A stretch of 61,761 bases of DNA, filler included, from Choristocarpus tenellus KU-1152 (taxonomy: Eukaryota > Protista > Phaeophyceae), in the NCBI GenBank assembly GCA_964200185.2. It is 9 parts of 9 records of this genome, joined end to end, with 100 filler letters (N's around TTAATTAATTAA, not from the genome) between each part and the next. Parts side by side here need not be neighbours in the genome. Positions count along the whole stretch, not along the records: positions 13,847 to 21,831 come from CAXNAD020005304.1; 8 more parts are not named here. One strand, 5' to 3'. This document shows, in pieces, positions 13,847-21,931 of the stretch (positions are counted from its first letter, which is position 1; each line of letters begins with the position of its first letter). A program made the position numbers and the translations under genes. Below the pieces are notes generated by a model, which saw nothing but the letters and a program-made list of their open reading frames with translations, did no database searches and was not told the origin of the DNA.

Positions 13847-14456
13847 TTCAAACTACCCTCTATCTCTTCCTACCATTGCCATTGCTATTGTCAATGTCTT
13901 TGTATAGCTATGCATGAACTGAAGCAACCCTAAGTAGACGACATAGATGCCGTCTCTGAACAGCAGAATTTGTGATAAGGAATCTGTTGGGCATTCCCAA
14001 CCTGACCATTGAAGTGTCTCACACAACTCAGATCAAACCCGCCTATCCTATTCTTGAGCTTCCTTTCTTGAAAGGTATATGGAGATTAGATCAAGAATGA
14101 TTTAGGTTATAGTTACATCATTTGATTTGAACTTTGGTTCAGCACCAATTTAAGGTAATGACATGTTCTGTGTTGGAAGGGTCGCTGGTATGAGTTTCCA
14201 TTTGTCAGGATCAAGCCCACTACCTTTGTTTCAGGGACCTGTTTATTCTAAGTTCAGCTATTGCCTTGAATCTGGTGAACTTGAGACACAACTGAACTCC
14301 TTGTGAGTAGGCGAATTAACCCTAATCCTCATTAGGAACTTCTCGATCTATTCGATACCCATCTCCACATTCTTCTCCCATAGTATGGGCTCCATTTACT
14401 GATAGGTGGAACTTAACTTTGAATCCCATCTGTGCAACACATTGACACAATTCCAG

Positions 14457-17400
14457 GGGATCGTGGAGGAGCTCTGTATGTTTTTGACTTTTCTACTGCC
14501 AACCTTGGAGGCAGTTCCACCTTTTTTAATAACAGTGCAGGTAAATCCATGCGTTCTGTCTTGACTAATGAGAGGTTGATTTTCCATAGTCTTTGTACAG
14601 TTCAGCGTGGAGTGGAAGAAGTGTCAAGTAAACTGTGATTACTAAGAGTTCGAAATATAGAAATGTGTTAAGCTGTCCTTGACGATCTGTTGCCCCCCAC
14701 AACCAGTTATATTTTTTATTAGCTTATATCCCAGCTGAGAAGAGAGTGAGACACCTTCACTAGGTAGGGCTCACCAATCCTAACATTGAATCAATTGCCA
14801 AATGCCCCGCATTATCTTCTGTTCGTATGTAAAATAATATTTCAAATCATATTCTAACAAGTAGTCAAGCATAATCTTGACACACCCCTCTGCTCTTACT
14901 TTGCAATGAGAATGAAATCAATCCAACAATAAAACCCAACTTGAAATCATCTTATCCTGCACACTTCAAATCTTAATCCTACACAGACAAAAAAAAACTT
15001 TCACACACTCCCCCGCTGTCCATATATGATGAATCCAATGAAACTAATCCGCACATTACCCCTTACTCACAGTGCATGATAGTTCTAGTGTGAAACTCAA
15101 ACACATTACCACTCCGAGCCTTCGTGAAAAAAATTCCATGTTGTTCACTGGAGTTGACATAAACAATCTGTGCCTTCCCCTCTTTCACTAGGTTTCTAGC
15201 ATAATAATATCTGATATCTATGTCTTGTCTGTTACAGAAATTGGTTTTCCCAAGACTTGTTTATGTAAATGGCTGGATTAATTCCTTATTATGCAGAACA
15301 GGCTGTACATGAAGTAAGGAAGGTGTAAGAAAGGAGAATGAGCTTCAAACTCAACAGCGGGATGTCCTTGCCTCCGAATCAATTCTATTCCCTGAATAAC
15401 TAATCAAACTATTTAGAAATTACTTTCCCACAATGCTTCCTATTCCTGGACTCTTACATATTCTAGTTCTTGAAACAATAGCTTATCTTACACACTTCAG
15501 AATACAAACACTGTCTATTCATCCTTAGATTGTTTATTCTACGGAATCTTTTATACACGAATAAAAATCATATTCTAAACATCGTCCTACCCCCTGAAGC
15601 TGTCTTCTCAGCCAACTTGATTGCCCTACTATTGTCTTCAAACAATCGTACACAATACTCGTGCACAGTTGGCTTCAAAAAAATCTTGGACTTGCTGCAA
15701 AAACATAAATTCTTAGGCCAAATCACATAACGACAAATACTCGGCCTCAGTGGAAGATAAAGCAACAGGCTTACGCATTTTTGACCCCCAGCTCGCACGT
15801 GCACCCCCAAACATTACCACGCCACCAGACACAGAAAATCTTGAAATGACACAATTGGCGTAATCAGCATCAGCATAGCTGATAAATTTACGAGTACTGA
15901 GGGTGACATCGAGTGACAGAAGAGGGATGAGTTGGTCCCTGGGTGCATTCCCGTAAAAACTGGAATCAACATAGGTCAATCCTCTACTGCTTGTCCTCAA
16001 CAGATACCCAATAACCCTCTCAGCCCCCTCCCAATCCGTCACCGTAGGGTTTACACATTTCATTGCTAGGCTCCTTACTGCAGATGATACATCGGGTCTG
16101 TTCATGATGGAGACCCACATAAAGCTCCCAACCATTGCACAATAACCGTCTCTCACTGGTCCCTCCTCAACAAACTCTTTGATGGCAACAGCAGGAAGGT
16201 CACAGCCAGTCGTGATCCAACGTTTTGTCGCGAAGTTTTCAACATATACCTGCTTGTCTATGGAAATAGTCCCTAGTCTACAATCCCTGTTTATGTGGCA
16301 TCCCATAAACTGTCCCTTCTCCCCAAGGTCCTGGAAACGAGGGCGTCGTAGGGGTTGCTGAAACACAACAATACCCCTCTTTCTTGGATGGTATCTCTCA
16401 AGACACTTACACTGGGAACTTCTTGTTCAGTCCTTGAACTATACTCAAGGCATGTTTAGACCCCTTGCTGGCCATAAGCATGTCATCGTCATGAATGAGC
16501 ATGTTCAATACCAGTTCCCCATCCAATATCCATCTAAATACATAAAGATCAGCCTCACATTACTCCAGTCCCAGCTCCAGTAATGACGCCACAAGTAAAG
16601 CTTCCCAATTAGTGATGCTTGTACAATCACATACAGTGATTTCTGTAGCTTCCCAACTGCCCCATCAAACTCAGCCACCACCCTCTCTCCTCTGGCAGCT
16701 CCACATACAAGTCTTCCTCCAGGTCTGCATTAGTGGAAGTCCTCACCATATTCAGGTCCCATCCCAAGCGTGCCGTCAACACCAGAATAATCCGCAGGCT
16801 TGACATTTGTGCTGGTGGTGCGATTTTTTCATGCCAGTCAATTCCAGGCTGTTGTCGAAATCCTTGCACCACCAGTCTTGCTTTCAATCGCTCCACTAAT
16901 CCAACTATATTGACCTTTCTCGAAAAAAATAAATTCTTTTTCAAGACAATTGCATCAGTTGGTCTGGGAACCTGAACCCATGTGCCTTAAGCAATTAATC
17001 CATCAATCTCAGCATAGATAGCCTCAAGCCACTCCTTCGACTCTCGAGACTCAAGCGCTGCCTTCACAATAAGAGATACTGGAGGCAAATCACTCGCTTG
17101 AGTATCCCCTGGCCAGCCCAGTCCCAACTATCACAAATCATATCCTCCACCTTACGTCTGACACCGATGGCTGTTTGTCTAGTGGTTCTCTTCTGTGCCA
17201 GGGGAGATTGTGACGGCCCCATATTATACTCCTGGAGCCGAGACAGCATCCTGGGTTCAGAGTGTTGTGACTGCCCTCCTGACCCAATACTCCCACTCCC
17301 ATGCTGTGGAGGCGACGCATCCCTGTCCCCATTGACTAGTGCAGAAATCCTCGTCCCAGACTCCCATTGCTTTTGTGCATTCCCTGACCCCAGATGTTCC

Positions 17401-20400
17401 CCCAAATGAATGTCTTCAACCATACCATCAAAATTAATTCCAGTCTCTTCATCACTCGAATCCCCAGGTGTTATTTCCCCTCTAGTGATCACTGGAAAAA
17501 TTTCTCCCTCCCTCCACAGAGGTAAACCCGAGGATTGATGTCAGGTGTCATCTTCAGATTGCTATCCCACATAGACTCCCAACTAATATCCCTACGCATG
17601 ACGAGTGGCCTTGATTAGTTACTGAAAACCCCGCCAGTCTTGGCTGTCCATCTCCAGCATCCAACTTTGATCCGTTTCCCTTGTTCTTCGAACCATTCCC
17701 CCCCATCCGATTCTTCTTCTGGATGTTTGAAGATTCCAGACCCCTTTGATGGTCCATATTTTCTATGCGGACAGTCAAAGCTTTGAGGACCTTTTTCTCC
17801 GCCAATGAAGCATGTAATTCCTCAATCGCTCACCTTCTGTTTCTTGATGAGAGGACACTTGGACCGGAAGAGAGGTCCACCACTTTCCCAACACTTTGGT
17901 TGACCACCATTTCGTCTGGATTGCCGTCCAGCCACCAGTGCGCCTGCTCTCGCCCCAGCCGAGTCCGACCCTTTCTGTATGCTGCGTAGTCGATATCTTG
18001 TAAGGACTAATTTTTCCAATTTAATCCTCCCTTCCACCGACGCCTCATCATCTATCTGGGACATGATGTCCAGATACTCCTCGCGGAGTGAATTTTGAAG
18101 CCAACTCACTCGATGTTCCTCTGTGACGGTACCTCCCGAGCTCTTCAACTCCATTAGGGTTAGCCTCCTGCCGATTGATAATATTAGCAGGATCTCCCCC
18201 AGGTTCCAGCACCATATCCATCAATTCTGGTTTCACAAGATTTCTCTCGGTCTGGCCTGAAAGGGCATAATTCCTCACCAGTGCGGCGAACACCTCACTC
18301 GGTGACTCATACGTGATTATGATGTCCAACACAGGTCCTGCTGTTGCCTCCTTCAGTCCATTGATAGCATACGTCGTTGCATGGTGCAGATACGGATCCA
18401 CACCCGCCGGGGAATACTCCAATGACAGTCTCCTCAGATGTTCCTGCGTAACTAATGGCTCCCTCCACCCCGAGGAGGAAGTGTGCGTAAGAAATGTTAT
18501 ACTCCATTTCCTCCACGTCCCTGGTTCCACCTGAAACGCCAGTTGTTTTCAGGAATATTGCTTCAGGTTCGGGGCAAATACGGGTCTAGTCCGCATGGTC
18601 ACCGTATCTCTAGCTCCATCCCTAGACTCGCCCCCTTGAAAAGCTGATGTCCCATCATGAATCGCATAGACCCCTCGGGTCATACTGTCGGTTCTTCCAT
18701 TCCGTCATCAATGGGGTTTAGACTTAAAACGATTCTTGATCTGGGCATCATAGTTTATCTTGACTCCTTCCGGGTGACAGCAAAAATCCAAGTATAATAA
18801 CTACGCAAGCACTTAAATAGGTGCTATAGTATGTTAGGCTGTCCTTGACAATCTGTTGTCCCACACAACCAGTTACATTATTGTTTATTAGCTTATATTA
18901 CAGTTGAGAATAGAGTGAGATACCTTCACTAGGTAGGGCTGGTAGGGCTCACCAATCCTAACATTGAATAACTTAGAATACCAAACTACTCAACGGATCT
19001 CTAGTACACGTCAGAAACACTCCGCCGATTACTTCTGGCCAAATACCTCGTCTAAGTATCCCGAATGCCCCACATTATCTTCCGTGCATACATAAAATAA
19101 TACTTCTAATCATATTCTCACAAATAGTCAAGCATAATTTTGACAAATTGATTACTAACCCTTACCCTTGAAGTCTACTAAACATCCACAGGTCAATCAC
19201 TGTAATACCAGACCAAACTCAAATGATGTGCTACTATGCCACCATTCTACTCTCATAACCCCATATATGTATTCAGATTTAGCCAGGACCGACCAATGTT
19301 GAATTTCGTTACCCATCTCAACATTCTCACTGCATAATATGAGTTCTATTTATCGCTATGTTAACACTAATTTTAAATCCCATCATGTAACTCGTTGGCA
19401 TATTACAAGATGGTCATGGAGGAGTTCTATATGCTAGTGCATCAAGCATAATTGAATTCGACGATTGTTCTACCTTTCATAACAACAATGCTGGTAAGTC
19501 TATGCATCTTGTGTTTAATGATTGAGGAAAGTCCATATAGTCGTGTGTATTCTGAGTTGGACAGGGAACTGATTAATGGGTATTTCACTGTATGTTGATC
19601 TTGAAAAAAACATCTGAACAGTAAAACCTTTCATAAATTTGTACAATGTAATTACAATCCTATTCCCACATTGAATGTTGTGATCTCGTGGAACTGTTCA
19701 ATTTCCTGAGAAGGGTTTATACTCACGTATTCAAGACTGATAAACATTGAAGCCTGGTCGTATTTTTTACGACCTATTTCCAGCACTATCTAAAGGTGGT
19801 TTCAAACAGATGGTGTTCAATGTAATTTACCATTTCTCTATATTAAAGTTTTGAAGGAGGTCACTGTTTTTTTGCTTTTTTATAGTCCATGGACGTAAGC
19901 CTTCTCTGCTGTAATTTGTCTTACTGAAATTTCACTTTTTATCTCAATACTCCTTTGTGCGGGATGAACTTGAACTTGTTAAGGATGGCAGAATAATCCC
20001 AATTCCCGCAAGAAACTCCTTCACCTAGAGGGTTGGGGTTATAGATGAATATTGAATCTTGTGTATTTTGTAGAAACATGTTTTGAATGAAAACTTTCCA
20101 TGTAATGCTTGAGTCAATTTGTCATATATGAAACTTGCTCATATCTTTTTCCTGCATCATTTTGGTATAATGACAGGCTCACTTGGAGGTGCAGTATATT
20201 TCCGAAACTCATCCTCTCTTACTTTGAAAGGCTATTCTACCTTTAGTGGAAACAGTGCTGGTAAGTCCATGTGTTTCTTTGTTCTACCCATCGGTGAGTA
20301 CTTTTGGTCAGAATGTAATGCATTTTTGTAAGTCTTCGTGTATGTTTTTTGTCTTCATTATTGGTAAACCTTGAAAGATGTAAATGTTAAAAAGCGATCA

Positions 20401-21525
20401 AAGTAGACTAATCCTTTTTTTTCACTTCGGCAGATACCTTAGACAAAGTCTCAATCTACAAATTATTGCAATCAAACATCATAATCAAGCATGGGTTATC
20501 TGTTGCCCAACTTGAAATAGCAGTGTGACATCATGATGCCGGTGCATGTGATCATAATTTGTATTTGATGAGTGAAGTATCTTTGAGGGTACGAGATCTG
20601 CCCTGTTTGTCCATTTTGGGCTGGCTGCCCATGGGTTTTTTAATGACGTATTCCTACTCCAGAATGTTTAGGAGTAGGTAAAATGTGTATGTTATGGGAA
20701 GGTATGTCCGGAACAAGGATGTTGGCACTTCCCTCACAAACATCATAGCCAAAATTTCATCAAAATCGCTACATTGGATTTTGGCCCCCAAAAGGACGCG
20801 GCCCTACCTTCCAAGATGCTTTAGGTCTGATACTGACAATGAATTGATCTCATGGCAATTACTAGAGTTTGGTGTAAGAAGAGAGTAGGCGCTTTTATAT
20901 TGTGCATCGTGAACAGATCATTGCTATGATCTTGATAAGTACTCATTGAAATTGTTGTGCAATATAATATGTTGATGACCTTTCTGCAGATATTCACATG
21001 TTCTGCTTTGTGGATACCACAATTTTGATCTCTAATTTATTACGTAATTTTCTTGTGATATGCCAAAGAGAACATCTTTCCATTTTATACTAACGTGTAC
21101 ATATTTACATTTGACAGGGTTGGATAAGGATGCAGGAGCTATTCGAGTGTATGACTCAAGCAATCTGACCATGGCAGGGGTTTTATCATTTGAAGGTAAC
21201 ATAGCAGGTAAGTGAACGTTTTTCATAGGGGTTGCTTAATTAGAATTAAAAAATATATATTACAACTCGGAAGAATATCAACAATTTTTCAGGTATCCAA
21301 AAAACTTCCCTGAACAATGGTGTCACATAGGGTTATTTGTTTCCAGTATGTGAATACCCTCAGAAGGCATAAAAAATTATGCAATAAAATTTCTACCTAC
21401 TCAAGTGATCACCATCCCACTCCTTTTTCATATATTTACAGGAAATGATGGAGGAGCCATCGCCATTGAGAAATCTTCAATACTATTCTCTCAAGGCAAT
21501 TCCACGTTCACAAGAAATTTGGCAT
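14457..21525 (+). CDS. Partial gene encoding polymorphic membrane protein (Pmp/POMP)-type right-handed beta-helix repeats, one repeat per exon (14457-14540, 19410-19493, 20177-20260, 21118-21207, 21442-21525)
   Basis: The exons translate GDRGGALYVFDFSTANLGGSSTFFNNSA / DGHGGVLYASASSIIEFDDCSTFHNNNA / GSLGGAVYFRNSSSLTLKGYSTFSGNSA / GLDKDAGAIRVYDSSNLTMAGVLSFEGNIA / GNDGGAIAIEKSSILFSQGNSTFTRNLA. Lengths are 84, 84, 84, 90 and 84 nt. All are AG..GT bounded, phase 1-1 and stop-free. A TACTAAC branch site lies at 21088. Both gene ends fall outside the contig. Confidence 0.85.
14666..14882 (-). repeat. Copia 3' LTR (carries a ~90-bp deletion relative to the 5' LTR)
   Basis: Direct repeat of 18832-19145. 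Confidence 0.88.
15230..15581. mobile_element. Solo LTR nested in the Copia RNase H region
   Basis: TGTT...AACA termini and TSD TTGTC/TCGTC. It interrupts the RNase H motif between SGGRT and (H)IDIRY. Confidence 0.78.
18832..19145 (-). repeat. Copia 5' LTR
   Basis: Direct repeat of 14666-14882. Confidence 0.88.
20570..20828 (+). mobile_element. MITE family A copy (degenerate)
   Basis: GAGTGAAGTATC...GATGCTTTAGGTCT termini and GAT/GAT TSD. The body matches the other copies. Confidence 0.82.
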
Positions 21526-21931
21526 GTACGTGAAGGTTTAATGTGGTTTCACACCAAAGACTCTTGGTCTGGTAGAAAACATGAACAAGGGATTTCACAT
21601 CAAGTATGAAATTTCTTTGGGGGCATTTGATGTCAGCAATGAAAGTGACAATGTCCAAATAATTAACATCGACACCAGATATTCATAGTTCAAATCCACG
21701 TCCGTAATATACTTTCTGTACTCTCATGCACGAGTCGAACACCAAACATGGATGTTCATACAGAGTTCTCATCTGCTGAACAGCATTAGAGACCTCGTAT
21801 TTCTGTCCCTTTGAAATAGTCTTCACCTCTTNNNNNNNNNNNNNNNNNNNNNNNNNNNNNNNNNNNNNNNNNNNNTTAATTAATTAANNNNNNNNNNNNN
21901 NNNNNNNNNNNNNNNNNNNNNNNNNNNNNNN

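Follow-up and report, generated by a model that had tools for sequence, protein, structure and literature searches.

Genes in which each exon carries a single protein repeat are already known from brown algae. The ROCO LRR genes, named as a precedent in a preliminary description of the locus treated here, are indeed of this kind, and the NB-ARC-TPR genes provide a further case (PMC3341825, PMC11378527). In a screen across Ectocarpus, series of symmetric exons of equal length turned up almost exclusively in LRR and TPR loci. ROCO loci are reported to bear dead or inverted intronic exons, splice variants, rearranged paralogs and sites under positive selection (PMC3341825). Brown-algal genes of one-repeat-per-exon design have been reported as essentially LRR and TPR receptors only (PMC3341825), a range that is extended by the beta-helix case presented below. 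The design itself is known; its Pmp beta-helix version is apparently new. Pmp-type beta-helix genes that devote one exon to each coil are apparently undescribed: a search for papers on Pmp-type repeats in brown algae or sponges, or in connection with exons, found nothing relevant in a coverage that leaves out most subscription journals, and no paper on a one-coil-per-exon Pmp gene was found, in line with what the preliminary description had supposed.

The window, a stretch of 61,761 nt along which all positions are counted, contains at 13847-21831 the piece examined here, which is the entire contig CAXNAD020005304.1 (7,985 nt; GCA_964200185.2) of Choristocarpus tenellus, placed by NCBI in the Phaeophyceae. 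Choristocarpus is an early branch among brown algae. Five exons make up the array:

14457..14540, + strand: e1, 84 nt, phase 1-1, one coil GGAL..FFNNSA; its 3' part is in the NCBI protein P0001
19410..19493, + strand: e2, 84 nt, phase 1-1, one coil GGVL..FHNNNA; acceptor aag; in P0001
20177..20260, + strand: e3, 84 nt, phase 1-1, one coil GGAV..FSGNSA; in P0001
21118..21207, + strand: e4, 90 nt, phase 1-1, one coil AGAI..FEGNIA; its 5' part is in P0001
21442..21525, + strand: e5, 84 nt, phase 1-1, one coil GGAI..FTRNLA; absent from the public model

All five are open, bounded by AG and GT and on the + strand, and are separated by introns of 4869, 683, 857 and 234 nt. The 3' end of each exon lies one base past the Ala codon of FxxNxA. 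The donor of e5 reads T/gtacgt, and the aag acceptor of e2 is of a less common, presumably weak type. Five such exons were observed against none in 300 shuffles, and a profile built from relatives' repeats alone scores the places of e1-e5 and no others when both strands of the piece are scanned. DNA and protein profiles found no further family exons in the 8-kb piece. The exon lengths (84, 84, 84, 90 and 84 nt), the 1-1 phase and the allotment of one repeat to each symmetric exon, all claimed beforehand, are confirmed by these bounds, shuffles and independent profile. A reading of the exons as chance or artefact is ruled out by the shuffles, the independent profile and the agreeing public model, and a bacterial contaminant by the spliceosomal introns, the Choristocarpus-type copia element and the annotated assembly. 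The five are probably internal exons of a larger gene, the array being known here from one 8-kb gene fragment, and the full architecture is unseen because the gene ends fall beyond the contig.

The public protein P0001 (93 aa, partial at both ends), the one protein retrieved by a word search with the reading frame of e3, runs from part of e1 through e2 and e3 into part of e4 in plain genomic order, using the same junctions as those called from the sequence; the e4-e5 junction is missing from it. C. tenellus is among the species of the Phaeoexplorer preprint, whose gene models derive from transcript or protein alignments (10.1101/2024.02.19.579948) and which is taken to be the origin of the P0001 annotation. 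The model gives indirect support for splicing, a transcript or protein alignment presumably standing behind it. A search of sequencing runs yielded no RNA run containing the locus. The exons are probably spliced mostly in order, constitutive splicing being an assumption, and the symmetric phase layout would make exon skipping possible without a frameshift.

Each exon was originally described as one GGA(I/L/V)x(17-19)FxxN unit with highly variable residues between the motifs. The single unit per exon stands, but in every one of the five exons 15 residues separate the first motif from F, and this motif follows GGA(I/L/V) in only three (GGAL, GGAV and GGAI in e1, e3 and e5), e2 having GGVL and e4 AGAI. 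Variability between the motifs is borne out by pairwise protein identities of 23-50%, short of one invariant Ser and a partly retained G-x-S-T ahead of F. Scaffold codons show a pN of 0.06-0.20 versus 0.46-0.68 for the other codons, a contrast that is partly built in because the scaffold codons were chosen as conserved. Between exon pairs pS is about 0.4-0.9, near saturation; set against a pS of 0.44-0.80, the variable-site pN gives a pN/pS near 1.

P0001 served as the spliced sequence for family scans, searches and folding. It scores 40.1 bits against PF02415 (Chlam_PMP; cut-off 20.6) and 25.4 against TIGR01376 (cut-off 15), and single exons, too short by themselves, remain below the family cut-off. 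The AlphaFold model, built from a 50-sequence alignment, has a pLDDT of 95.5 and a strand period of 28 residues, so that one exon corresponds to one coil. In this predicted model the loop that follows the N-x-A strand contains the junctions (residues 17, 45 and 73). The structures that match the model are parallel beta-helices, with middling Z of 5.5-7.0 and rmsd of 2.1-2.8. A shared beta-helix fold by itself gives no function. A PDB sequence search, a Foldseek search with a single-sequence model and an Rfam search returned no match. With both family cut-offs passed and a beta-helix predicted for the spliced product, the proposed Pmp-type identity holds.

A search of the full protein library with P0001 provided the relatives, which are long repeat proteins of prokaryotes, of a sponge family (Dysidea) and of brown algae (Ascophyllum, Ectocarpus sp. 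4). Those of brown-algal type are built from a signal peptide, in many cases LNR repeats, then the beta-helix, a Cys-rich stretch and a membrane domain of several passes, for which the matches are weak and TRP-like. Brown-algal-type proteins account for seven of the ten best single-stretch matches to P0001; classification exon by exon is split between brown algae and sponge or prokaryote sets, with no clean sorting. Many of the proteins P0051-P0199, of which Dysidea avara is the sole named source, have 1,500-2,800 residues, with Pmp repeats alongside a Cys-rich stretch and 5-8 predicted membrane helices; a literature search turned up nothing on them. In ERZ26962164 (ENA; L003, L013, L014), several diverged intronless (LNR)-Pmp-repeat genes lie on separate long contigs, two of them with an ORF behind them whose membrane domain is weakly TRP-like; these genes are an expanded, little-described surface-protein family of brown-algal type. 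The Notch-domain genes of Ectocarpus are known in outline (PMC3879662, PMC3874173).

At all eight relatives' loci inspected, from brown algae, sponge and other contigs, 13-23 repeats lie in one stop-free frame versus one per frame in Choristocarpus, and the one-coil-per-exon layout is therefore unusual for the family, in a sample biased toward intronless genes because many of the proteins seem to come from gene callers blind to splicing. The Ectocarpus-wide screen gives independent support for the layout being unusual (PMC3341825). Introns annotated in the Ascophyllum and Ectocarpus repeat regions are in frame and stop-free; the models at Ascophyllum L002 3001-5913 and Ectocarpus sp. 4 L004 3953-6388 excise such stretches, probably through artefacts of annotation by which the proteins are cut short. 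Next to the Ectocarpus sp. 4 Pmp-repeat gene, and in opposite orientation to it, lies an LRR gene (L004 13861-15078). A word search found no paralog, a blank that does not amount to paralog absence because the search is insensitive, requiring shared 5-residue words and similar length. In JGI metagenomes, a splice-aware DNA pattern gave six matches, all chance or intronless.

On balance, it is likely, if by no wide measure, that e1-e5 belong to a larger C. tenellus Pmp-repeat beta-helix gene whose array arose by tandem duplication of an exon with its flanks, and whose exons are spliced mostly in order into one rod-like binding or adhesion domain. The gene would most likely be of the brown-algal family, with a signal peptide, optional LNR, 13-27 coils, a Cys-rich stretch and a multi-pass membrane domain, an architecture seen in the relatives and inferred for the Choristocarpus gene. 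Each exon would supply one coil of 28-30 residues, with the intron in the loop after the N-x-A strand. Tandem duplication of the exon with its intron flanks over evolutionary time is strongly indicated; purifying selection would hold the scaffold residues while the others diverge, and in-order splicing would yield a rod-like extracellular binding or adhesion domain. A role in adhesion or in self/non-self recognition, as suggested earlier, is conceivable from the predicted fold and the relatives' architecture.

The introns bear on how the array arose, through the following features:

14347..14456, + strand: intron sequence upstream of e1, with homology to that upstream of e2
19300..19409, + strand: intron sequence upstream of e2, with homology to that upstream of e1
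14666..19145, - strand: degenerate Ty1/copia LTR retrotransposon in intron 1, RVT_2 E 1.4e-11
14666-14882 and 18832-19145, - strand: copia LTRs, TG..CA ends, 88% identical
20575..20822, no strand assigned: MITE-like element in intron 3, ~250 nt, with terminal inverted repeats whose ends pair

The intron lies at the identical point of the repeat in all five exons, and independent gains would hardly produce such agreement. Upstream of e1 and e2, the introns agree at 63 of 89 positions (-110..-21 window; local score z=13.9), and on the donor side at 13 of 20; the other nine of the ten exon pairs show no significant flank homology, their flanks being older still or unrelated. Because the intron position is common to all repeats and e1 and e2 share flanks, the array most likely grew, as read from the sequence, by tandem duplication of exon plus intron flanks, and the proposed origin by exon duplication is supported to that extent. 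The e1/e2 homology is a trace either of such duplication or of intron copying between repeats. It predates the copia insertion, the flanks (29% divergence) being roughly three times more diverged than the LTRs (191 of 216 identical, 12% divergence). The exon centre of e1/e2, with 20 of 45 positions identical, is more diverged than the flank (Fisher p=0.0045), which plain duplication with drift does not predict. Synonymous sites are likewise more diverged than the flank (p about 0.03, on 17 synonymous sites only). A diverged centre may reflect a variable part that changes fast or has been replaced, constraint on an element within the intron, or coils that are older than the introns around them.

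The copia element retains RT and RNase H remnants, and its closest matches are from Choristocarpus and Ectocarpus. The right LTR is ~90 nt longer, the target-site copies AAATG/AATTG match at four of five positions and a purine-rich tract adjoins the 3' LTR; the usual TGG primer-binding site was not found in the element. Relative to other copies of the family, which is high-copy in DNA runs, there are deletions near 15876-15927 and 16329-16410. The MITE-like element at 20575-20822 belongs to a very abundant family in the C. tenellus genome: its summed depth in DNA runs is about 4e5 versus tens in the flanks, and hundreds of different loose ends occur at both borders.

The preliminary description had gone further and proposed a modular diversification system. 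In an active system of the ROCO kind, coils would be swapped, gained or lost by recombination at conserved intron flanks and/or combined by alternative splicing to give a repertoire of binding surfaces. Such a system is unlikely here. It would accord with the symmetric one-repeat exons, with the LRR and TPR precedent (PMC3341825, PMC11378527), with the e1/e2 centre being more diverged than its intron flank, with the less common aag acceptor of e2 (its weakness being inferred), and with near-identical variants of the e2-e5 region (19161-21791) in two DNA runs, on contigs 2-11 letters off the assembly. These variants, which include one synonymous change (21188 A>C, in e4), may represent allelic sequences, a second copy of recent origin or discrepancies of assembly, contig depth not being equal to copy number; the comparison covered 6,000 nt with e1 outside, and no variant contig spans the array. 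Against it, the sole gene model follows plain exon order, and DNA and protein profiles on both strands of the 8 kb found no dead, non-coding or inverted exon copies in the introns. In addition, flank homology is confined to one of ten exon pairs and is older, at 29% divergence, than the 12% of the LTRs, and no clean removal of a whole exon occurs among the DNA joints listed. The pN/pS, near 1 and saturated, speaks neither for nor against diversifying selection. The proposed system is accordingly not supported so far.

Less probable again is an origin from an intronless ancestor resembling the other brown-algal members: one intron would have been gained at a repeat boundary and spread to the other boundaries when gene conversion acted between conserved motif ends, leaving old coils flanked by younger introns. 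This would explain the single reading frame of the repeats in all eight relatives inspected, e1/e2 flanks that are more alike than the exon centre or the synonymous sites, and the resemblance of e2 and e5 to neighbouring early repeats of one Fucales-type subfamily (7 of 300 controls each). Yet that positional homology between exons and relatives' repeats, suggestive within the one subfamily, did not extend to a set of 14 brown-algal-type proteins, and the synonymous comparison comprises 17 sites only. Moreover, the exons have motif codon choices in common, as duplicates would, and the contrast with the relatives is equally explained if crown brown algae lost the introns. Finally, a non-expressed relic or exon reservoir in place of a working gene is very improbable: although no RNA run contains the locus, a 4.5-kb copia and a MITE-like element occupy introns and the public model lacks both ends, each of the five exons is open and has kept its splice sites intact despite heavily diverged synonymous sites, and an evidence-based model covers four of them.

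What the array means depends on whether its coils vary. As a beta-helix case from an early-branching lineage, with the other inspected members intronless across their repeats, it offers a clean test of the way repeat arrays are built and of intron loss versus gain. If the coils vary by splicing or recombination, brown algae would have in it an extracellular equivalent of their intracellular candidate immune receptors; if they do not, it is an ordinary exon-duplication product of modest interest. It is doubtful that Choristocarpus has, besides LRR and TPR, a third repeat class under exon-level diversification, with coils of extracellular beta-helix receptors or adhesins that are recombined or alternatively spliced to yield a variable repertoire, in a layout that crown brown algae lack or have lost.

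Among known systems, the chlamydial Pmp autotransporter adhesins (PF02415, TIGR01376) share the alternating GGA(I/L/V) and FxxN motifs and a predicted right-handed beta-helix, whereas the Choristocarpus gene is eukaryotic and spliced, and its binding is putative. The eukaryotic relatives showed no autotransporter barrel and have a multi-pass membrane domain in its place. The sponge protein XP_065895934.1 of Dysidea avara, of Pmp-repeat/Cys-rich/multi-TM type, has the same repeat and gives top whole-protein scores, but it is from an animal and its gene is nearly intronless (1204 aa in 3724 nt). Ascophyllum CAM9843134.1 and Ectocarpus sp. 4 CAM9749701.1 share the repeat, of 27-28 residues with a modal spacer of 15, and differ in carrying 13-23 repeats in one stop-free frame where Choristocarpus has one per exon. 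The ROCO LRR and NB-ARC-TPR genes (PMC3341825; PMC11378527) resemble the array in having one repeat per symmetric exon of near-constant length and a fixed scaffold with variable positions, and they occur in the same class of organisms. In contrast to them, the repeat here is a Pmp beta-helix, in exons of phase 1 and 84-90 nt versus phase 2 and 72 nt, and it is probably extracellular, unlike those intracellular candidate immune receptors; the scanned exons and ORFs gave no match to a ROC-COR or NB-ARC domain with LRR or TPR. The Choristocarpus array is built like the ROCO and TPR arrays and is a member of neither.
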